DNA from: Adineta vaga
Taxonomy: Eukaryota > Animalia > Rotifera
Direction: 5' to 3'
DNA length: 64,000 nucleotides
Assembly: GCA_021613535.1 (NCBI GenBank)
Contig: CP075492.1
Coordinates: 4,154,001 to 4,218,000 of the forward strand
The stretch's first letter is position 1, and each line of letters opens with the position of its first letter. Under the pieces are notes generated by a model. The model searched no databases. It was not told the origin of the DNA and saw only the letters and a list, made by a program, of their open reading frames with translations. This document shows positions 5,924-37,410 of the stretch, in pieces. Position numbers and translations under genes: made by a program.

Positions 5924-8072
5924 ATGGCTAACACAGACGTTTTACCAGCGATACCAACTTCATTCATTTATGAAGCTTTGGTCGAACAAGTTCAAGCGAT
6001 ACAAAATCAAGCGATAGAATTTGAAAATATTCTTGCTGAACGATGGCAAAATAATAAAGATATGCGAAAAGAAGTCAAATGTCATTCATACACTTTTATC
6101 GATCCATATGGAAATGAAATGATCGAAGAACATATGGATCACGAAGCAACGAATAGTATCGTTCGAAAATTGAAGAAAAATTATGTACCAAAATATTTGA
6201 AAAATTGGATTCAAATTGGTATATTGAATGCAAATGGTTTATCTGCTCTCAATGATGGTGATCTGAAATCAACAGTATCAAATTATGTTGATGATTGTCA
6301 ATTTGTTGCCTTTGGAGAAATTAAAGTTTGGCTTGGACGTTATGACACTCTCTCACCACAGAAAATCGATGTTAAAGTTCGTCTAACAGATAATTTAGAA
6401 AAAATCCTATTTCGAATTAAAGAACAACATCAATTTACCAATATTGAATTACGATTAGGTGATATAGGTCAAACAGCTGTGCCAACTATAGAAAATTGGA
6501 ATGCTGGTGCAGCACTCAAATCAGAAGACACAATTTTATCTCGTCGAGTATATCAAGATAACTATATTATCATGGCTAAAATCATACAAGAAGCCAATGT
6601 AATTATCTTGTATATTTTTGAAAAAAAATTTCTTCTTCTTTGTATTAATCTAATCGTAGGCATCGAATTCAGATACTGCTTTTGATTTGTTTATTCAAAC
6701 TCTAACTGGGAAACAAGTTCAACTAATTGTTAGTCCTACAACAGATATAACGATGGTAAAAGAATTGATACAAACAAGGGAAGGTATTCCTCCAGATCAA
6801 CAACGTTTCATATATGCTGGCAAACAATTGGAGGATGATAGAAAATTATCAGACTATCATATTCCAAATGGAGCGGTCATTCATCTTGTGCTTCGTTTAC
6901 GAGGTGGAATGTATCATTTTACCAGTGGTCGACAAGATTTCAGTCAACTACCTAATGGATGTGGTAATGCTATTCAAAATGTTCTTACATTTGAAACGAA
7001 AGATATTGATGATATTCATCAATTATCATCGACTGATTTGCAAGAATTTGTCATGCAAGCAAATCTTCTACTAACATCTTTACATCGCAAAACGAAAGAG
7101 ATTTATATAGCACGTAATCTTCCAGATTTGAAAGCTATGATCTTACCAACACCTGTCGATGATGCAGAAGACAGTGAAGGTGAAGATGATGATGATGAGA
7201 ATACTTCTAATGATCAATGACTATTATTATCACAAAAACAACTTCGAGTCTATCGATTATTAGAACGTCACATCCTCAAAGATCTACTCATCAAAGAAGA
7301 ACAACTAAGACTCTCTCCACAAACACAACAACTATTATCATCCATTCAAGATCGAACCGATATTGATTGGATGGACGTCATTGCTGATCTACAAACCAAT
7401 TTGATCAAAGAAGCTATTGGTCAAGATGCAAATGATCAAGAAATTCAACATGGTTTAAATATTTTGAGAAGTGCTCATCAAATCTATTCAAATGATGATG
7501 AATTTCATGATCTTTCTCTCTATGTTCGACATAATCGTGCACGACAAGGTCATCTCGAAGTTGGTGATCCATCACCTGATGTTCAACTACTGAATATGGA
7601 TCAACAATTTGTATCATTATTATCTCATTGTCATTCTCCTCATCGACCATTGTTAATCATTGCTGGCTCATATACATGACCTCCATTTCGTGGTGCTGTA
7701 CCACAACTTCATCAACTCATGGATATGTACAAAGATCGTGTTGATATGGTGACTGTCTATATCGAAGAAGCACATGCATCAGATGAATGGCCAATTGGCA
7801 GTCGAATCTGTTATGTTCAACCGAAAAGTGATGCTGATCGATTGAAGATTGCTACAGATTTCATCAAAGCAACCGATTATCGAATACCAATGTTGATCGA
7901 TCCAGTATCACTTGGTAATCCATTTAGTAAAGAATATAATCCATGGCCAATTCGATTTTATGTAGTGGATGGAATGAAACGATTGAGTTATATAGGTGCA
8001 CCGATTGAAGGATCATATCCATTGGAATTAATCAGAAATGCATTGGATGAAGCGATTCAACAATGTCAATAG
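5924..8072 (+). CDS. Ubiquitin-domain / iodothyronine-deiodinase-like selenoprotein fusion, copy A (exons 5924-6598, 6660-8072; in-frame TGA at 7218-7220 and 7677-7679; 695 aa if both are read through)
   Basis: After the phase-0 intron 6599-6659, ORFs 6687, 7371 and 7719 share one frame and are separated only by single TGA codons. Ubiquitin domain ends HLVLRLRGG. Deiodinase motifs [14 protein letters not shown] and [17 protein letters not shown] in the 3' UTR. Confidence 0.85.
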
Positions 8073-8135
8073 AGGGTGATTGTGTGATAGATATCGATGA
8101 TGATGATGATAAAATTGTGATACGTAAAACAATTA

Positions 8136-8186
8136 ATGATATTTTTCGTTGAAAGTATATAGCTAATATACAGACGATAAATTGAT
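8136..8186 (+). promoter_or_regulatory. Type II SECIS element, copy A
   Basis: AUGAU-AUUUUUCGUU-G-AAA-GUAUAU-AGCUA-AUAUAC-A-GACGAUAAAU-UGAU: UGAN/NGAN core, 10-bp helix II, unpaired AAA and apical mini-stem, about 65 nt after the stop codon. Confidence 0.9.
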
Positions 8187-9285
8187 CCAGCTCGTGTTTG
8201 CTTGTTACAATGTTATACATCATCGTTTTCGTTTTACTTTATTTAAGAATTATGAATAAAATTTATTTTCCTTTCCTATTTGAAAAGATCAAAATAATAA
8301 ACATATAGTACATGTGTAAAATTTCAAAATGTGATTCAGTTTGTGTCATTCGCACTAATTTAGTACAATAGGTAACTTGAAAAACAGTTATTGAAGTCAA
8401 TAATTTAATGCCGTAAAAATAATTATGGTTAGTTTAATCTTAAAAGTCTACTACTACAGTGATTTCATAATTCATATATTCCAAATACTCACATTGAGAA
8501 GCAAATTTCCAACGAAACAAGTAAACTTGTTTTTCTTCTTTTCATCACTTCTTCTGTATGTTATTCTACCAGCTACCTTAAAAAAACAAGCGATGTTTAA
8601 AATGTGCAGAATAGATTTGTACACATCGCAACTGAGTTTTAACTATTCGAAAAGAAAAAGAAGAACGAAAGAATCCATCGACATATAAAATGTTGTGTCT
8701 ACTCTGTAATGAAACAAAATAACAAAAAAACACTGAAAGTAAGTAATGTTTAATTTTTTTTTCTTTTGCTGCAGAACTTTTAATAGACTATTCCTCCAGA
8801 CAAGCGATTCCTTTCGCGGAAAGATGTAAATGATCTGAGCAATCGACTAAAATGTGTAGGAAACTGACTTCATTGAAGTTTGAAATATACAGACATATGA
8901 AGAACCTTCTCCAATTTATGATAATTAGGATGGAACCAGTTCATCCTTACCTTGCACATCAGCAGAGATGATCTTGAAAACATGATTTTTATATTTACTC
9001 GGTCTTGACATCACATACCTTTAAAAGACTTCTGAAAAAATTTGTGGGATTGACCGCACTCTTTTCTTTGCAAAAATGCAACTGATCGTGCATTTTGAGA
9101 TAGTTTATAAATTTTCTGATATCGAGGAGAAACAGGCGGATCTACCATTTTCCCGAATTTTACACAGTTTTCTCTTTTTCATTGATTCATGTTGATGAGT
9201 AAATCTATCGCTTTCTAAAATGACCCCTCTCTTTTGTAGAAGATCTATTCTACTTTATACATTCGAAAAACTTTTGAACACGAAC

Positions 9286-13014: not shown

Positions 13015-16000
13015 TGTGATGCCGGATGAGATGAGTGAGAATGAAGATTGGATTCAAAGTGAGCAAAAGAGATGAAGAATAGTATCTTAAGTAATGTTCA
13101 TGAGTGATGTGATATTGGATGAGATGAGTGTGAATGAAGATTGGATTCAAAATGAGCAAAAGAGATGAAGAATAGTGTCATGAGTAATGTTCATGGGTGA
13201 TGTGATATTGGACGAGATGAGTGAGAATGAAGATTGGATTCAAAGTGAGCAAAAGAGATGAAGAATAGTATCTTAAGTAATGTTCATGAGTGATGTGATA
13301 TTGGATGAGATGAGTGTGAATGAAGATTGGATTCAAAATGAGCAAAAGAGATGAAGAATAGTGTCATGAGTAATGTTCATGGGTGATGTGATATTGGACG
13401 AGATGAGTGAGAATGAAGATTGGATTCAAAGTGAGCAAAAGAGATGAAGAATAGTATCTTAAGTAATGTTCATGAGTGATGTGATATTGGACGAGATGAG
13501 TGAGAATGAAGATTGGATTCAAAGTGAGCAAAAGAGATGAAGAATAGTATCTTAAGTAATGTTCATGAGTGATGTGATATTGGACGAGATGAGTGAGAAT
13601 GAAGATTGGATTCAAAGTGAGCAAAAGAGATGAAGAATAGTATCTTAAGTAATGTTCATGAGTGATGTGATATTGGATGAGATGAGTGAGAATGAAGATT
13701 GGATTCAAAGTGAGCAAAAGAGATGAAGAGCAGTGTGGTGGGTAATGTTCATGAGTGATGTGATATTGGATGAGATGAGTGAGAATGAAGATTGGATTCA
13801 AAGTGAGCAAAAGAGATGAAGAGCAGTGTTTTGAGTAATGTTCATGAGTGATGTGATATTGGATGAGATGAGTGAGAATGAAGATTGGATTCAAAGTGAG
13901 CAAAAGAGATGAAGAGCAGTGTGGTGGGTAATGTTCATGAGTGATGTGATATTGGATGAGATGAGTGAGAATGAAGATTGGATTCAAAGTGAGCAAAAGA
14001 GATGAAGAGCAGTGTTTTGAGTAATGTTCATGAGTGATGTGATATTGGATGAGATGAGTGAGAATGAAGATTGGATTCAAAGTGAGCAAAAGAGATGAAG
14101 AGCAGTGTTTTGAGTAATGTTCATGAGTGATGTGATATTGGATGAGATGAGTGAGAATGAAGATTGGATTCAAAGTGAGCAAAAGAGATGAAGAGCAGTG
14201 TGGTGGGTAATGTTCATGAGTGATGTGATATTGGATGAGATGAGTGAGAATGAAGATTGGATTCAAAGTGAGCAAAAGAGATGAAGAGCAGTGTTTTGAG
14301 TAATGTTCATGAGTGATGTGATATTGGATGAGATGAGTGAGAATGAAGATTGGATTCAAAGTGAGCAAAAGAGATGAAGAGCAGTATGGTGGGTAATGTT
14401 CATGAGTGATGTGATATTGGATGAGATGAGTGAGAATGAAGATTGGATTCAAAGTGAGCAAAAGAGATGAAGAGCAGTGTGATGAGTAATGTTCATGAGT
14501 GATGTGATATTGGATGAGATGAGTGAGAATGAAGATTGGATTCAAAGTGAGCAAAAGAGATGAAGAATAGTGTCATGAGTAATGTTCATGAGTGATGTGA
14601 TATTGGATGAGATGAGTGAGAATGAAGATTGGATTCAAAGTGAGCAAAAGAGATGAAGAATAGTATCTTAAGTAATGTTCATGAGTGATGTGACATTGGA
14701 TGAGATGAGTGAGAATGAAGATTGGATTCAAAGTGAGCAAAAGAGATGAAGAATAGTATCTTAAGTAATGTTCATGAGTGATGTGATATTGGACGAGATG
14801 AGTGAGAATGAAGATTGGATTCAAAGTGAGCAAAAGAGATGAAGAATAGTATCTTAAGTAATGTTCATGAGTGATGTGATATTGGATGAGATGAGTGAGA
14901 ATGAAGATTGGATTCAAAGTGAGCAAAAGAGATGAAGAGCAGTGTGGTGAGTAATGTTCATGAGTGATGTGATATTGGATGAGATGAGTGAGAATGAAGA
15001 TTGGATTCAAAGTGAGCAAAAGAGATGAAGAGCAGTGTTTTGAGTAATGTTCATGAGTGATGTGATATTGGATGAGATGAGTGAGAATGAAGATTGGATT
15101 CAAAGTGAGCAAAAGAGATGAAGAGCAGTGTTTTGAGTAATGTTCATGAGTGATGTGATATTGGATGAGATGAGTGAGAATGAAGATTGGATTCAAAGTG
15201 AGCAAAAGAGATGAAGAGCAGTGTGGTGGGTAATGTTCATGAGTGATGTGATATTGGATGAGATGAGTGAGAATGAAGATTGGATTCAAAGTGAGCAAAA
15301 GAGATGAAGAGCAGTGTTTTGAGTAATGTTCATGAGTGATGTGATATTGGATGAGATGAGTGAGAATGAAGATTGGATTCAAAGTGAGCAAAAGAGATGA
15401 AGAGCAGTATGGTGGGTAATGTTCATGAGTGATGTGATATTGGATGAGATGAGTGAGAATGAAGATTGGATTCAAAGTGAGCAAAAGAGATGAAGAGCAG
15501 TGTGATGAGTAATGTTCATGAGTGATGTGATATTGGATGAGATGAGTGAGAATGAAGATTGGATTCAAAGTGAGCAAAAGAGATGAAGAATAGTATCTTA
15601 AGTAATGTTCATGAGTGATGTGACATTGGATGAGATGAGTGAGAATGAAGATTGGATTCAAAGTGAGCAAAAGAGATGAAGAATAGTATCTTAAGTAATG
15701 TTCATGAGTGATGTGACATTGGATGAGATGAGTGAGAATGAAGATTGGATTCAAAGTGAGCAAAAGAGATGAAGAGCAGTGTGATGAGTAATGTTCATGA
15801 GTGATGTGATATTGGACGAGATGAGTGAGAATGAAGATTGGATTCAAAGTGAGCAAAAGAGATGAAGAGCAGTGTTTTGAGTAATGTTCATGAGTGATGT
15901 GATATTGGATGAGATGAGTGAGAATGAAGATTGGATTCAAAGTGAGCAAAAGAGATGAAGAGCAGTATGGTGGGTAATGTTCATGAGTGATGTGATATTG

Positions 16001-17612
16001 GATGAGATGAGTGAGAATGAAGATTGGATTCAAAGTGAGCAAAAGAGATGAAGAGCAGTGTGATGAGTAATGTTCATGAGTGATGTGATATTGGATGAGA
16101 TGAGTGAGAATGAAGATTGGATTCAAAGTGAGCAAAAGAGATGAAGAATAGTATCTTAAGTAATGTTCATGAGTGATGTGACATTGGATGAGATGAGTGA
16201 GAATGAAGATTGGATTCAAAGTGAGCAAAAGAGATGAAGAATAGTATCTTAAGTAATGTTCATGAGTGATGTGACATTGGATGAGATGAGTGAGAATGAA
16301 GATTGGATTCAAAGTGAGCAAAAGAGATGAAGAGCAGTGTGATGAGTAATGTTCATGAGTGATGTGATATTGGATGAGATGAGTGAGAATGAAGATTGGA
16401 TTCAAAGTGAGCAAAAGAGATGAAGAATAGTATCTTAAGTAATGTTCATGAGTGATGTGATATTGGATGAGATGAGTGAGAATGAAGATTGGATTCAAAG
16501 TGAGCAAAAGAGATGAAGAGCAGTGTGGTGGGTAATGTTCATGAGTGATGTGATATTGGATGAGATGAGTGAGAATGAAGATTGGATTCAAAGTGAGCAA
16601 AAGAGATGAAGAGCAGTGTTTTGAGTAATGTTCATGAGTGATGTGATATTGGATGAGATGAGTGAGAATGAAGATTGGATTCAAAGTGAGCAAAAGAGAT
16701 GAAGAGCAGTATGGTGGGTAATGTTCATGAGTGATGTGATATTGGATGAGATGAGTGAGAATGAAGATTGGATTCAAAGTGAGCAAAAGAGATGAAGAGC
16801 AGTGTTTTGAGTAATGTTCATGAGTGATGTGATATTGGATGAGATGAGTGAGAATGAAGATTGGATTCAAAGTGAGCAAAAGAGATGAAGAGCAGTGTGA
16901 TGAGTAATGTTCATGAGTGATGTGATATTGGATGAGATGAGTGAGAATGAAGATTGGATTCAAAGTGAGCAAAAGAGATGAAGAATAGTGTCATGAGTAA
17001 TGTTCATGAGTGATGTGATATTGGATGAGATGAGTGAGAATGAAGATTGGATTCAAAGTGAGCAAAAGAGATGAAGAATAGTATCTTAAGTAATGTTCAT
17101 GAGTGATGTGACATTGGATGAGATGAGTGAGAATGAAGATTGGATTCAAAGTGAGCAAAAGAGATGAAGAATAGTATCTTAAGTAATGTTCATGAGTGAT
17201 GTGACATTGGATGAGATGAGTGAGAATGAAGATTGGATTCAAAGTGAGCAAAAGAGATGAAGAATAGTATCTTAAGTAATGTTCATGAGTGATGTGACAT
17301 TGGATGAGATGAGTGAGAATGAAGATTGGATTCAAAGTGAGCAAAAGAGATGAAGAGCAGTGTGATGAGTAATGTTCATGAGTGATGTGATATTGGACGA
17401 GATGAGTGTGATTGAAGATTGGATTCAAAGTGAGCAAAAGAGATGAAGAGCAGTGTTTTGAGTAATGTTCATGAGTGATGTGATATTGGACGAGATGAGT
17501 GAGAATGAAGATTGGATTCAAAGTGAGCAAAAGAGATGAAGAGCAGTGTGGTGGGTAATGTTCATGAGTGATGTGATATTGGATGAGATGAGTGAGAATG
17601 AAGATTGGATTC
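13015..17612. repeat. 93-bp-unit minisatellite, about 49-50 copies, ~80-bp constant part plus ~13-bp variable cassette
   Basis: Unit GTAATGTTCATGAGTGATGTGATATTGGATGAGATGAGTGAGAATGAAGATTGGATTCAAAGTGAGCAAAAGAGATGAAGA followed by one of about 7 cassettes. Gives a 31-aa period in the minus-strand ORFs. Confidence 0.97.
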
Positions 17613-18773
17613 GAAAGGGATGTAGAATAGTTTATGTGTGTTTTGTGTGTGTGAAGACAATAGTGTTGATTGTTAAAGTGACTGAAATAAAGGTTTATAT
17701 GGTGAAAGTTGAATCTTCAGTAATCACTTATGTGTTAAGTTATTCGTGCAACGAATTAAAGTTTTTTCAACTATCGTTTTTTAGGTACTTTGAAGGATAA
17801 AAAACGTTTTTTTTGTATTATTGAAGGTTGACTTCTGTTGAGCTAGATTGTAAGATAATGAATGAGTACTGGTGAATTGAAAGATGGCACGTTTTAGAGG
17901 GGAATGGCGTGATCGTATGTCGGAAAGTCATTTGGTATTAATTCTTAGAGGTTTCAATCGACAAACTCCACGGGGAATATATATTAGTCATACGGTCGAA
18001 TGGTACTGCACTTTTAATGTAGAAATCGTTACTTCCAGGAAAGAAAGACATCAACTTGTAAAACGGCTAAGAAAATTATGCCAATTTCAATTGAAACTGT
18101 CTTGTACTATATTGTTTCGAAAGAATAAGGACACAGAAGTAGCAAGTTCCTTCAAATGAAACAAAAATGCAACAGATCATATAGAAGTTTATGCTACGTA
18201 TTGAGCAATAGTTAATACAGAAAAGTGACTCATGAACATTTGTAGAGAATCAAGTTACGAGAGAAGTTAGTTTTGTCTGAAAAGGTTGACTGAGTAATAA
18301 TTAGTTGTAACAAGTCCAAGGTTGTGGGTACAAACCATTTTTATTTCTTTGAATTATGAAACAAGTACTGTGACGATAATCTTTTCGAAAAAAAATCGCA
18401 TAAAACTGTCGAATTCACCGTTTTGCACAATATAGAAGACTGCAGTGTATTCTGCACGTATATGAATGAATAAAAAGTATGATAAAATACATGGTGACCG
18501 GTGACATCTATAACAAATGTGGATATTTTGTGGAATCTGAATTAATTTTGAATAAAAAAATCCAATTTGAAAATAAAAAATAAAGTTGTGAAAGTATAGA
18601 AAATTATTTGAATAAATTGATGTTGTCATTGTTATTAAATGATTCATCTCATGACGGAACAGATGGTTCACTCTCATTTCCTTGTTCTCTGTTATTCTTT
18701 TCTCACTCAACATGGCAGATAATTAATTGTTTTTTTCTCATACATTTGTTGTTGGTAAATAATATCCCCGAAA

Positions 18774-26807: not shown

Positions 26808-27665
26808 TTATTAAATATATATCAAGATAATAATCAATAACTTTCGAAATATCATTAGAATAAAATATATATTAATATTGTGGGTGTAGACCATCTGATA
26901 CCCTATAATCAGTATAGCGCATATGACTCTAGATGTCGATGATTGCTGAATGTGATCTGTATGTTATTACAAAGATATAATAAAGTCGTTCCTAATTTTA
27001 CTATAGAGAACAATTAGAAATGATAAATCTTGAGGGTGTGGGTATGATCGTAAACTCATTTTGATATAATTTTGATTCGTTCACCTTAACATATGTAATA
27101 AATTCATACCTATTAACAAAAGATAAAACAGTTGATTTCATCTCGTTTTCTTTTTTGTACATCGATGAGTAAGGACATTTTCAAAACTACGCATTTCAAT
27201 TTGAATTAATTAAACTTTGGAAATCAAATCTTCACAAACAAACGAAGATAATGTCGATGACATCGTTATAATACTTTCTATTAATCTAAAAGAAATCTTC
27301 CATTTTATCATTGACTCTTTATAATTTATTCGAGAATAATCGCTTGTGCATGTCTTGTGTGAGCGAATAAATTTTATAAACAAAACGATACCTCATGCTA
27401 ATCTCCTATATGTTAGTCTAAGTGAACAAACACTTTTCTAGTTGTGATTTAGAAGACTCTTTGATCAGTTTATTAGAATAATATGTAAAGAGAAACTTTG
27501 TCAATTATTAACTACAATAGCTCGATCAATAATATTGTTTTATTTTAATTGATCAATGACAAGTAATATAAAAAACAAAATTATAAAACAAGAGAACACA
27601 AATGAGTAAAATTTGTATGTGAAAGGGAATACTTGATATAATTGTGATATGAAAGAATATTATAC

Positions 27666-27714
27666 ATCAGTTTTTTGTCTGTACATTCTATATACTTTCA
27701 ACAAAAAACATCAT
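27666..27714 (-). promoter_or_regulatory. Type II SECIS element, copy B
   Basis: Minus strand AUGAU-GUUUUUUGUU-G-AAA-GUAUAU-AGA-AUGUAC-A-GACAAAAAAC-UGAU. Same fold as copy A with compensatory changes. Confidence 0.9.
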
Positions 27715-27745
27715 TTTACTTCTTTACATATCACAATCACTCTCT

Positions 27746-29893
27746 TTATTCACATTGCTGAATCGCCTCATCCAATGCATTTTTGATTAATTCTAATGGA
27801 TATGATCCTTGAATTGGTGTAGCTATATAACTCAATCGTTTCATTCGATCAACAACATAAAATCGAATTGGCCATGGATTATATTCTTTACTAAATGGAT
27901 TACCAAGTGATACTGGATCGATCAACATTGGTATTCGATAATCGGTTGCTTTGATGAAATCTGTAGCAATCTTCAATCGATCAGTATCACATTTGGGTTG
28001 AACATAACATATTCGACTACCGATTGGCCATTCATCAGATGCATGTGCTTCTTCGATATAGACAGTCACCATATCAACACGATCTTTGTACATATCCATG
28101 AGTTGATGAAGTTGTGGTACAGCACCACGAAATGGAGGTCATGTATATGAGCCAGCAATGATTAACAATGGTCGATGAGGAGAATGACAATGTGATAATA
28201 ATGATACAAATTGTTGATCCATATTCAGTAGTTGCACATCAGGTGATGGATCACCAACTTCGAGATGACCTTGTCGTGCACGATTATGTCGAACATAGAG
28301 AGAAAGATCATGAAATTCATCATCATTTGAATAGATTTGATGAGCACTTCTCAAAATATTTAAACCATGTTGAATTTCTTGATCAGTTGCATCTTGACCA
28401 ATAGCTTCTTTGATTAGATTTGTTTGAAGATCAGCAATAATATCCATCCAATCAATATCAGTTCGATCTTGAATAGATGCAAGAAGTTGTTGTATTTGTG
28501 GAGATAACCGTAATTGTTCTTCTTTGATAAGTAAATTTTTGAGGATGTCACGTTCTAATAATCGATAGACTCGAAGTTGTTTTTGTGTTGATAAAAGTCA
28601 TTGACCATTAGAAGTATTCTCATCATCATCATCTTCACCTTCGCTGTCTTCTGCATCATCGACAGGGGTTGGTAAGATCATAGCTTTCAAATTTGGAATA
28701 TCATTAGGAATATAAAATGCAGCGATTTCATTATATAAAGTTGAAAGAATAGTTTGTCCTTGCACAATAGTATCTTGTAATTCGAATGGTGATAATTGTT
28801 GACTACTATTTTTACAATTCAATTGAAATGCAAGTACTTTTTTAACAGCATCAACACTGGTAGCAGGAAACTCTCGAAAATCTTGTCGACCACTGGTAAA
28901 ATGATACATTCCGCCTCGTAATCGTAATACTAAATGTATTGTGCTTTCTTTTTTTATATTGTAGTCACCAAGAGTTCTGCCATCTTCTAATTGCGTTCCA
29001 TTGAATATTATACGTTGTTGATCAACACAAATACCTTCCACTTCTTCAATTAATTCTTTCACGCTTGGTACCTCCATTTGGCGGTTTACTTCAATGGTAA
29101 TTGTTTTTCCAGTGAGAGTTTTCACAAATAACTGGTAGCTCTCGTGAACATGAGGATCAGTCTATATAAAAGAAGCGAAATAAAATTAGATTAGATTATT
29201 AAGATATAAATCTTAGGTTACTTTTTTATTGTAAACTTTTGCCAATAGAACACAATTTTGTAGATAAACCTGACTTGACATGACTGTATCTTCACATTTT
29301 AATAATGTGCCTTCAGTCCAGTTTGTTGCATTTGGTGTTGCATTTTGTTCGATAGTCGATGATTTCAGCTGAATATCGGTAAACCGTCTTTGTTCTTTTA
29401 TCCTCTGTTGAATCTTTTCCATATTATCTGTTAATAATATATTAATAGTAATTTTTCGTGACAAAAATGATTCATGAGTTCCAATCCATACAGTTACTTC
29501 ACCATATGAAACAAATTGCTGGTTCGTTGTGTAGTTGGAAACAGATGATTTTAAATCACCTTCGTTCAATGGTACAATACTATTTTCATTTAAAATACCG
29601 ATCCGTATCCATGGTTGTAAATATTTCGGAACATAGTCTTTTTTATATTTTTTGATTATTTTCGTGATTGGTTCATGATCCATGTATTTATTCTTCATCA
29701 GATTTCCATATGGATCAATAAATGTTAATAAACGTGATTTTAATTCATTTTGTAGTCTTTTATCTGTTTGCCATTGATTATTAAGACGAGTTTCCATTTC
29801 AAGCATTTCATTTTGAATTGTTTGAACTTGAGAAACTAAATCTTCATAAATAAACGATGTTGCTGTCGGTATAACAACGGCAGCAGTCGCCAT
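27746..29893 (-). CDS. Ubiquitin-domain / deiodinase-like selenoprotein fusion, copy B (exons 29893-29222, 29161-27746; in-frame TGA at 28600-28598 and 28141-28139; 695 aa)
   Basis: Same architecture, intron position and UGA codon numbers (412, 565) as copy A, with its own SECIS. Confidence 0.85.
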
Positions 29894-34390: not shown

Positions 34391-34860
34391 ACGGAACAAC
34401 CAGCAGCATGATCAATGATATTTTTTCATCCAAGTAAAACTTTTGTTTTGAAAAAATATTCTTACGAAATCTAATTCTTCATTTAGTTTATCTTCGTTCA
34501 ACATCTGAAAAATGGTATAAATATTATCCATGGGATTCAAATTGGAAAAAACTTTCGATTGGTTTAAGTCTTTCAATTGGATATTATATTTATCTATTCT
34601 TTTTATCAATATCAACAGTATTGAGAAAGTTTTCGCAGTTTTATTTCATTATTTGCATTACTTCTTTCACTATTCGTTAAATGTAATGGTTTACAATTAT
34701 TAAAACTTCTACCAACGAAAATCCATTCTACTGCAAACTTCCCAACCTGCATACGAATTGTTCATAAAAATGTTTTATCTCTTACTTCCTCAGTAATTTT
34801 ACGTGATCTACTTGCTATTCTTATCGTAACGGTTTTTCTTTTCTCTTCATGCCTTTTTCT
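34391..34860 (+). pseudogene. Decayed partial duplicate of the 5' end of the neighbouring antiporter gene
   Basis: Aligns by eye to about 35790-36300, including the first intron. ATG>ACG at 34391, TGG>TGA at 34409-34411, deletions. Confidence 0.85.
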
Positions 34861-35789
34861 AAACTATTTGTTTATGTTGATCATGTATGAAGATGGAGAA
34901 AAACAATCAAACATCTCACGAATAACGATAGATCAAGAAAAAAACGTTCATCGTTAAATAAAGCCAAGAAAAAGAAGCAACAATAACAAAATATCCTATA
35001 TTCGTTCTTCTATTAAACGTTATATTTTTCTCGTAATTGATCGTAAATAATTTTACTAATACTTCCATATTGATTGATATGATCAGATACTTCTTTAGTG
35101 AAATCAATAGTTTTGTTTTGATTGTTCTTCATCCTAAAATAAAAAAGAAGGGTTTGACTTTTGAAATTGATAGATGGCTATTTTTGTCATAAACGGGATT
35201 GAGAAAAAAAACTTCTTACAGGGATTTTTTCTGCTATATCACATATGCAACAGCTATATTGTGAATGGCAAAAGATCTATATATATATCATATTTTTCAT
35301 TGACCTCGTCCGTCATTGAAAACAAATATGTGAAAAATAAAGTTTACATACAGGAATGTTGATAAACATATTTTCATTAGTTTCATTTTCATTCAAACAA
35401 TTCATCGTATTAAGCATTTCCTCCGATTTGATTTGATTTAGTCCTAAAAAAACTTAGCCTAGTCAACAGATAACTTTCTAAAGTTCCTTATTCACTACAA
35501 CGTGTGGAACATGGCATTCGACCAGCTTTAGATTGTGACATGTAACATGATGGCAACAGTTAACCTGAGAAACTATTGTAGCGATGCGGATCTGTGTAAT
35601 ATTAATTAATAGGCACTGGAAGACATTGTTCGAGTTGATTTCCTTTGTGAATTGAAGATGGAGTGAAAGATCGAATGGAATAAAAATATAGACTATCAGA
35701 AAATAATCCTCTACGAAGTCATAAACAAAATTCTTGTTTACAGGATCAGCGATAAACATCGCTGCCATCGACATTCTTTTCTCGATACA

Positions 35790-37410
35790 ATGGAACAACC
35801 AGCGACTTGGTCTATGATTTTTTTTCTCATACTTCTTCTTATCATTATATTCTTTCCATTTTTTCATCCAAGTAATTCATTTTCGAACTAACTTCCTTAC
35901 GGAATCTAATTCTTCATTTAGTTTATCTTCGTTCAACATCTGAAAAATGGCATAACTATTATCCATGGGATTCGAATTGGAAAAAACTTTTGATTGGTTT
36001 AAGTCTTTCAATTGGATATTATATTTATTTATTCACTTTATCATCTTCCATAGCATGGAAAATGTTTTCATTTAGTTTTCATAGTTTTATTTCATTATTT
36101 GCATTACTTTTTTCACTATTTGTTTCATGTACTGGTTTACCATTACTAAAACTTCCTTCAACGAAAATTCATTCGTCTACAAAACTATTAACTCTAATTT
36201 GTATTGTTGGTAAAAATGTTCTTTTTCTAGCTTTTTCAACAATTTTATGTAATTTAATTGGTACACTTGCTGCAAGTGTTCTTCTTTTTCCTTCATTTCT
36301 TTCTCAAAATTCATCTCGATTAAATCATTTAAATAATCAACGGTTTCTAATTATCTTCTTCATAATAATAATCGGAAATTGTGCTGGAGTATTAAGTCCA
36401 TTAGGTGATCCTCCATTATATATGGGTTATACCAATGGTGTTGAATTTAAATTTACATTTATATATCTTTATAAGATATTTTTAGTTGCTAATGTATATA
36501 TTTTAATTATATTTGCATTTATTGATTTGTTTAATGCATGGATTTATCGAAGAGAACAAAAACATCATAAGAATCGAACATATGAATTAACATCTTCTGG
36601 TGAAAAATTTGATGAACGTTATGATCTTTCATCTGCAGTGCGGATTCAATGGAATGGAATTTATCATGGAGTTTTTTTGGTGTTAATTATCGGTACTGTA
36701 CTACTGAAAGGTTTTAATATTCCATTGAAATGGCCAGAATATGTTCAAGAAATCATTTTATTTATCATTGCAATTGTATGTATTTGTTTTGATGTTGTTT
36801 GGACAAAACAAACATTAAAACAATGGTGGAAGAGCAATTATTCGACACGTATTGAACCTGTTGCAGAAGTGATTGTAATTTTTGTTGGATTATTTTTTAC
36901 TATGTCAGCACCAATAACAATTTTATCGAATTTAAATCTTCAATTCGGACCAAAAGTATGTGATTTGTTTCGTTGAAAATGAATTAAACTTATTCTCTTT
37001 AGTTATTATTTCTATTATCGGGAATCTTTGCTGCACTTCTTGATAATGCTCCAGTTTATATCAGTTTTGCTGCAAGTGCTGCTGCACGACATAATATTAC
37101 TGTTGATACGACTGATTTTCTTGCTACTTTCTTTGCTGAACATGAAACTGATGCAATCATTACCATTCGTGCCATATCCGCCGGATCAGTTCTAATGGGA
37201 GCATGTACTTTACTTGGAAATGCACCGAATATGATTATTGCATTAATGGCAACTCGATATACGTATCGATTAGAAAATTCAATGAATAAATCCGAAGATG
37301 AAGACATTCCGATTTATCGTTTGGAAAATGTTGGATTTATTCGATTTATGATAACATCTTGTTTAATATTAACACCGATTTTTGTTGTAATAGATTTATT
37401 TATGTTGTAA
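35790..37410 (+). CDS. Ion-transporter superfamily permease (CitMHS_2 / putative Na+/H+ antiporter type), 3 exons
   Basis: Multi-TM protein with GNCAGVLSPLGDPPLYMGY, EV...F.G.F.TM, LLDNAP.Y..F and AISAGSVLMGACTLLGNAPNM motifs typical of this mainly prokaryotic family. Confidence 0.8.

Follow-up and report, generated by a model that had tools for sequence, protein, structure and literature searches.

Two convergent deiodinase-like genes and the hairpins behind them

The window, the whole stretch of 64,000 nucleotides of the bdelloid rotifer Adineta vaga that was analysed, contains two deiodinase-like genes in convergent orientation, designated copy A and copy B, and each of them is followed by a compact hairpin in its 3′ UTR. 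The features of the two genes are listed below, with positions numbered along the window.

7218–7220, plus strand: in-frame TGA lying 153 codons upstream of the Sec codon of copy A; it ends a ubiquitin-like gene
7371–8072, plus strand: copy A deiodinase-like coding sequence, from the first ATG to TAG, 233 codons, without introns
7677–7679, plus strand: catalytic Sec codon (TGA) of copy A, within GSYT-U-PPF
8127–8199, plus strand: predicted copy A SECIS with putative helix I, from a constrained fold; helix I pairs 8127–8131 with 8195–8199
8136–8186, plus strand: predicted copy A SECIS core; AUGA 8136–8139, helix II 8141–8150/8173–8182, AAA 8152–8154, apical stem 8155–8160/8166–8171, UGAU 8183–8186
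8255–8301, plus strand: two AATAAA signals, at 8255 and 8296, downstream of the copy A hairpin
27539–27544, minus strand: AATAAA, about 120 nt 3′ of the copy B hairpin
27652–27725, minus strand: predicted copy B SECIS with helix I; helix I pairs 27725–27720 with 27657–27652
27714–27666, minus strand: predicted copy B SECIS core, with the same layout as in copy A
27746–28447, minus strand: copy B deiodinase-like coding sequence, from ATG to TAA, intronless, convergent to copy A
28139–28141, minus strand: catalytic Sec codon (TGA) of copy B, GSYT-TGA-PPF as in copy A
28598–28600, minus strand: upstream TGA of copy B, homologous to 7218–7220 of copy A

The translation of copy A is open throughout 7371–8072, with one in-frame TGA as its sole interruption. 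This TGA takes the place of Sec in an S-x-T-U-P-P-F active-site motif that is present in both copies, and it recurs in six more paralogs and in all orthologs. In the protein searches the pieces on each side of the TGA were queried separately and exons were never joined. The piece of copy A that follows the TGA matched the Pfam family T4_deiodinase (PF00837) with 48.2 bits (cut-off 27, E = 1.1e-12), and the N-terminal piece that precedes it had no Pfam match when queried alone. The coding sequences of the two copies are 95.7% identical at the DNA level, their codon differences comprise 18 synonymous and 10 non-synonymous changes, and none of the family-invariant residues is changed in either copy. 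The pair shares with the known deiodinase family, including its invertebrate genes, the thioredoxin-fold domain, the G-S-x-T-U-P-P-F Sec motif and a single SECIS in the 3′ UTR. It differs from known deiodinases in that the rotifer set is expanded, with at least eight TGA-bearing genes seen, in that both genes lack introns and continue the frame of a ubiquitin-like gene from which a conserved TGA separates them, and in that public rotifer annotations truncate the gene at the Sec codon.

Self-BLAST of the window delineated a 2.1-kb inverted duplication (5949–8084 versus 29868–27732) with 77% identity. Beyond the end of the duplication (8084/27732), the sole re-alignment of the two copies is an island at 8135–8186 versus 27715–27666, with 84.6% identity, which coincides with the hairpins. 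The intervening sequences, 50 nt long in copy A and 16 nt in copy B, are unalignable, and no alignment between the copies was found downstream of the hairpins. The first-pass annotation had described the two 3′ UTRs as otherwise diverged and different in spacing, a description borne out by this comparison, the hairpin beginning 63 nt after the stop codon in copy A and 31 nt after it in copy B. Other repeats of the window include a tandem array with a 93-bp period (13015–17620, about 50 copies, 94–96% identity) and a direct repeat of about 450 bp (34420–34863 and 35858–36309, 78% identity).

Both hairpins present the same order of elements: AUGAU, a 10-bp helix II, an unpaired G, AAA, a 6-bp apical stem, an unpaired A, the return strand of helix II and UGAU. 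The boundaries (8136–8186 and 27666–27714) and the motifs AUGAU...AAA...UGAU that had been assigned to them from the letters alone are exact in both copies. The AAA lies 12 nt from AUGA, in a bulge beneath the extra apical stem, and the UGA at 7677 of copy A lies 459 nt 5′ of the hairpin. The apical loop measures 5 nt in copy A and 3 nt in copy B, for cores of 51 and 49 nt, respectively. Folding of short pieces returned the SECIS structure in both copies (z = −3.2 for the copy B core, z = −1.5 for copy A), and the unconstrained minimum free energy (MFE) fold of copy B is the SECIS fold. When 14-nt flanks were added and the quartet was held open, a helix I of 6 bp formed in copy B and one of 5 bp in copy A. 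The former (AAAGAA/UUCUUU) is common to most orthologs; the latter (AAACA/UGUUU) is weak, is not common to the orthologs and could be due to chance.

The hairpins of copies A and B differ by six substitutions, one of which is a transversion, and by a 2-nt indel in the loop. All six substitutions fall in paired columns, where pairing is kept or improved, and none falls in AUGA, AAA or UGAU. From copy A to copy B, the basal pair of helix II changes from A-U to G-C, a C-G pair becomes U-A, a U.U mismatch becomes U-A, and in the apical stem U-A becomes U.G, exactly the compensatory changes and the apical G.U pair that the first-pass annotation had reported. When six substitutions were placed at random, equal pairing was obtained in 0.4% of the trials, and the motifs were also spared in 0.03%; this test is suggestive rather than decisive, being post hoc, because the structure was derived from the very sequences tested.

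Contigs assembled from sequencing runs overlap both 3′ UTRs; that the runs are RNA is only a guess, and the contigs cannot prove 3′ ends. In two of the runs a contig skips from 6598 to 6660 with GT..AG ends, a sign of spliced RNA in those two. The copy A hairpin is spanned by a contig from one of these two runs (8099–8314) and by another (8099–8329) from a run of a different study, in which no spliced contig was found; both end shortly past the second AATAAA (8296). A contig of the copy B type departs from the copy A reference at 8084 and follows the copy B UTR into the first bases of the hairpin. Polyadenylation upstream of the hairpin had been named at the outset as an observation that would speak against a SECIS; for copy A it is not supported, because RNA-type contigs span the hairpin. 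No variant was found within 8136–8186 in the three runs that cover the copy A hairpin. A separate low-depth contig (8302–8543) contains a CT..AC joint from 8438 to 8493; such a joint would correspond to a minus-strand intron and thus suggests a convergent transcript that ends near the 3′ end of copy A.

Conservation and covariation among bdelloid orthologs and paralogs

A protein search with the C-terminal piece returned bdelloid rotifers only (Adineta ricciae, A. steineri, several Rotaria and Didymodactylos carnosus), the closest proteins being those of A. ricciae, and nearly all of the matched bdelloid proteins are 117-aa entries that start at the first Met past the Sec codon. We fetched eight ortholog loci from five other bdelloid taxa (one from A. 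ricciae, two from A. steineri, four from Rotaria and one from Didymodactylos). In the public models of these genes (L016–L030), the upstream model terminates exactly at the Sec TGA and a 117-aa ‘iodothyronine deiodinase’ begins at the next Met. The public records of A. ricciae, A. steineri, Rotaria and Didymodactylos therefore split the gene at its Sec codon. The convergent gene pair is likewise found on one contig in A. ricciae. The orthologs outside A. vaga and A. ricciae contain introns at places where the genes of those two species lack them.

A covariance model, R1, was trained on seven elements of the A. vaga genome. It yielded one match at each of the eight ortholog loci, none of which was in the training set, always on the coding strand, 31–69 nt past the stop codon and with 25.9–48 bits. 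The score of copy A itself is 54.3 bits, copy A being a training member and the lowest-scoring of them. RNAalifold, applied to a plain MAFFT alignment of 10 orthologs, recovered helix II and the apical stem de novo. AUGAU, AAAG and UGAU are invariant in all 10 sequences, and 97.3% of the cells are in standard pairs (98% for helix II) versus 40–55% when the partners are slid by 1–3 columns. Double changes occur in five pairs, with a covariation score that none of 500 shuffles reached. At the base of helix II, five orthologs have A-U and the other five G-C. At position 7 of this helix, seven orthologs have C-G, two have U-A and one has U.G, the last looking like an intermediate; at the second apical pair, U-A is found in six sequences and C-G in the remaining four. 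What is counted here are sequences and not events: the split between A-U and G-C mostly follows the genus, and copy A represents one independent switch.

Five further paralogs of the A. vaga genome carry a TGA in GS-x-[TS]-U-PPF, and each has an AUGA..AA(A)..UGA/GGA hairpin on the correct strand, approximately 160–185 nt behind the last protein match. These hairpins have the same architecture as those of copies A and B, with unrelated helix sequences and with a helix I of 7–9 bp that also displays covariation. In the 15 elements taken together, 20 of the 22 pairs show double changes, and the covariation score is 0.54 versus 0.22 for shuffled alignments (0/500 reach it) and 0.10–0.21 for slid ones. 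The 15-element alignment (A3) was made by fitting the sequences to the model, and in part of it the orthologs are shifted out of register; its figure of 80% paired cells is an underestimate, because the MAFFT alignment A1 had set copies A and B one helix II column off and this shift was partly inherited. The register problem was met with an anchor-based table and with the separate ortholog alignment.

Elsewhere in the window, a loose ATGA..AA..GA hairpin pattern turns up approximately 0.12 times per kb of single strand. Since such a pattern is by itself not rare, the case is carried by position and conservation. For a zone of 100 nt, this background corresponds to an expectation of approximately 0.012 per gene, and a SECIS-like hairpin was found on the right strand behind 7/7 of the A. 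vaga Sec-deiodinase genes tested and at 8/8 ortholog loci. With such a background, a hairpin in the right 100 nt behind gene after gene is not due to chance. Another paralog, L004 (G000:C2:6410374–6413733, minus strand), is an intronless deiodinase-like gene with a TGA in GSYS-U-PPL; neither the pattern scan nor R1 revealed a convincing hairpin behind it, and a marginal AUGA..AAA..GA candidate begins 24 nt past its stop codon. We also searched the whole genome (100.8 Mb in six pieces, 31% GC) with R1. Among 150 candidates scored out of about 150,000, only the seven training elements were found at E ≤ 0.1, which indicates that the model is specific; the absence of other SECIS elements from the genome does not follow from this result.

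Nature and function of the hairpins

SECIS_1 (RF00031) is the top Rfam family at both hairpins, with AUGA, AAA and UGAU at the correct positions of the model. Its score is 18.7 bits for copy A (aligned at 8128–8198, in a 96-nt scan), 23.2 bits for copy B (27656–27722) and 27.2 bits for the best paralog, L006, values that lie below the gathering score of 35 bits, which is a database threshold and not a biological property. The Rfam comparison proposed in the first-pass annotation thus returned the expected family and motif alignment at a score under that threshold. A gathering scan of the whole window gave no match, and in scans by E-value SECIS_1 was missed in a 401-nt piece around copy A, owing to the filters, and at copy B when nine loci were searched together. 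The low scores are probably due to the AT-rich helices (22–29% GC); because such elements score under the Rfam threshold, default scans miss them.

The rotifer hairpins share with eukaryotic SECIS elements of form 2 (type II) their position in the 3′ UTR, the AUGA/(U)GA quartet, the 10-bp helix II, the AAA in a bulge below the apical stem, and a putative helix I under the internal loop. They depart from RF00031 by their high AT content and scores of 18.7–27.2 bits, by their compact core (49–51 nt) and by their location very near the stop codon (31–69 nt), and copy A further departs from it by its U.U mismatch and its poorly supported helix I. The genome also encodes components of the Sec machinery. 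A tRNA-Sec with anticodon TCA was found (66.7 bits versus an Rfam cut-off of 47), together with a SepSecS homolog (300 bits) and two SelD/SPS loci. The SelB model TIGR00475, which is bacterial, did not single out eEFSec among the GTPases.

Taken together, these results make it very probable that both hairpins function as SECIS elements of the eukaryotic type II, located in the 3′ UTRs of two convergent, locally duplicated genes for selenoproteins of the bdelloid deiodinase family. This reading rests on the anatomy of the hairpins, their conservation and covariation, the Sec machinery genes and the presence of the hairpin inside RNA-type contigs; SBP2 binding and Sec insertion are inferred from the known behaviour of eukaryotic SECIS elements. 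The earlier proposal of SECIS elements under structural selection is now backed by the eight ortholog loci, the de novo fold, the covariation, the five paralogs and the Sec machinery. The description of the two-copy comparison as direct evidence of selection was an overstatement for two sequences alone, and it is the wider set of orthologs and paralogs that supports it. In the proposed mechanism, the AUGA and UGAU strands would form a tandem sheared G.A kink-turn core bound by SBP2, and the 10-bp helix II would keep the unpaired AAA at its canonical spacing. The SECIS complex would then bring eEFSec with Sec-tRNA(UCA) to the ribosome, where the TGA (at 7677 in copy A, at 28141 in copy B) would be decoded as selenocysteine in GSYT-U-PPF and not as a stop.

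Several alternatives to this interpretation were considered. It is very unlikely that the two hairpins resemble each other because gene conversion has acted between the inverted copies, rather than because the RNA structure has been under selection. Identity between the copies does leap from 60–70% (5949–7100) to 87–99% (7100–8072), and the confinement of this jump to the deiodinase part (7100–8072 versus 28720–27746) suggests conversion or homogenisation of that part; moreover, the two A. ricciae copies (L016 and L017) have identical 117-aa C-terminal pieces and identical hairpins. However, identity collapses at the stop codon, and conversion does not account for the hairpin, because the latter lies outside the tract, separated from it by the unalignable spacer (50 nt in copy A, 16 nt in copy B), and its identity between the copies (84.6%) falls short of that of the coding sequence (95.7%). 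Conversion would not produce differences of a compensatory nature either, and it leaves unexplained the conservation and covariation across genera and among non-orthologous paralogs, by which this alternative is largely refuted. Even less credible is the possibility that the hairpin is some other conserved 3′ UTR element, or a chance hairpin in AT-rich DNA, and that the TGA is a true stop codon or a leaky one independent of the hairpin. The Rfam scores under the threshold and the frequency of the loose pattern in AT-rich DNA are compatible with this possibility, but SECIS_1 is the best Rfam family at both sites with its motifs correctly placed, the counts of 7/7 genes in the same genome and 8/8 ortholog loci far exceed the background expectation per gene, and the TGA lies exactly at the Sec position of deiodinases.

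Less remote, but still improbable, is the alternative that only copy B has a fully working SECIS and that copy A is weakened and drifting, yielding little full-length selenoprotein. In its hairpin and flanks, copy B is similar to A. ricciae and to the remaining orthologs, and copy A is the odd one. It is the only one of the 10 orthologs with a U.U mismatch in helix II and with a core of 51 instead of 49 nt, its flanks are devoid of the AAAGAA/UUCUUU helix I of most orthologs, and its scores are the lowest both with Rfam and among the training members of R1. In addition, its unconstrained MFE fold in a long context differs from the SECIS fold, with an unremarkable z-score, and a G8196T difference in the contig of one run falls in its putative helix I, at the sole G-C pair of that helix. 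On the contrary, all core motifs of copy A are intact, as are 15 of its 16 pairs, and the base pair of helix II was switched to A-U on both sides without being broken. Its coding sequence is also intact, with unchanged invariant residues and more synonymous than non-synonymous differences, and its hairpin-bearing UTR is found in RNA-type contigs, without variants in the core in the three runs. Single mismatches in helix II are, furthermore, frequent among working SECIS elements. We favour the interpretation that both copies carry a working element.

The elements described here are new, their kind is already known, and the family to which the genes belong is already known as selenoproteins. In the literature searched, the papers retrieved dealt with fish feed and retroelements, and none treated selenoproteins of bdelloids or the SECIS elements of these animals. 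The practical use of the result lies in gene annotation. Our results indicate that bdelloids retain a working-looking Sec system and an expanded family of deiodinase-like selenoproteins, and the 15-sequence alignment with its model provides a means of finding such SECIS elements in rotifers. The understanding of how SECIS elements work is unchanged by these findings.

The conserved in-frame TGA upstream of the deiodinase domain

The SECIS is also the cis element needed for judging a second, conserved UGA farther upstream. The frame of the copy A deiodinase runs on upstream of its first ATG to the TGA at 7218–7220, without any ATG between this TGA and 7371. The TGA is followed by C at all nine ortholog loci analysed and in 11 of 11 bdelloid genes from four genera, and the 50 codons that follow it, which contain no ATG, show conservation at the protein level (tblastn E values from 1e-13 to 1e-28). 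An RNA-type contig (7157–7780) covers the upstream TGA together with the coding sequence past the catalytic TGA.

On these observations the codon is a leaky stop, or else it is a second Sec codon under the same SECIS. A SECIS located in the 3′ UTR can in principle serve any in-frame UGA upstream of it, and Sec at the upstream TGA is for this reason a possible alternative. UGA followed by C is, on the other hand, the leakiest of stop contexts, and ordinary readthrough is for that reason an equally good explanation. Accordingly, we regard only as a tentative possibility that the non-catalytic UGA at 7218–7220 and 28598–28600 is also served by the 3′ UTR SECIS and read as Sec. Should this be the case, selenium supply would decide between a stop after the ubiquitin-like protein and a ubiquitin-like–deiodinase fusion with two Sec residues. 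Such an arrangement would resemble that of selenoprotein P and its multi-UGA mRNAs, in that one distal SECIS would serve two UGAs, and would differ from it in that the rotifer mRNA has two UGAs only, the first of which lies at a linker and not at a redox site.

The upstream gene itself (5924–7220, plus strand) is spliced. A 61-nt GT..AG intron (6599–6659), observed in RNA-type contigs, separates an N-terminal part that is unannotated from a ubiquitin-family domain that ends with LRLRGG and is followed by an acidic tail.
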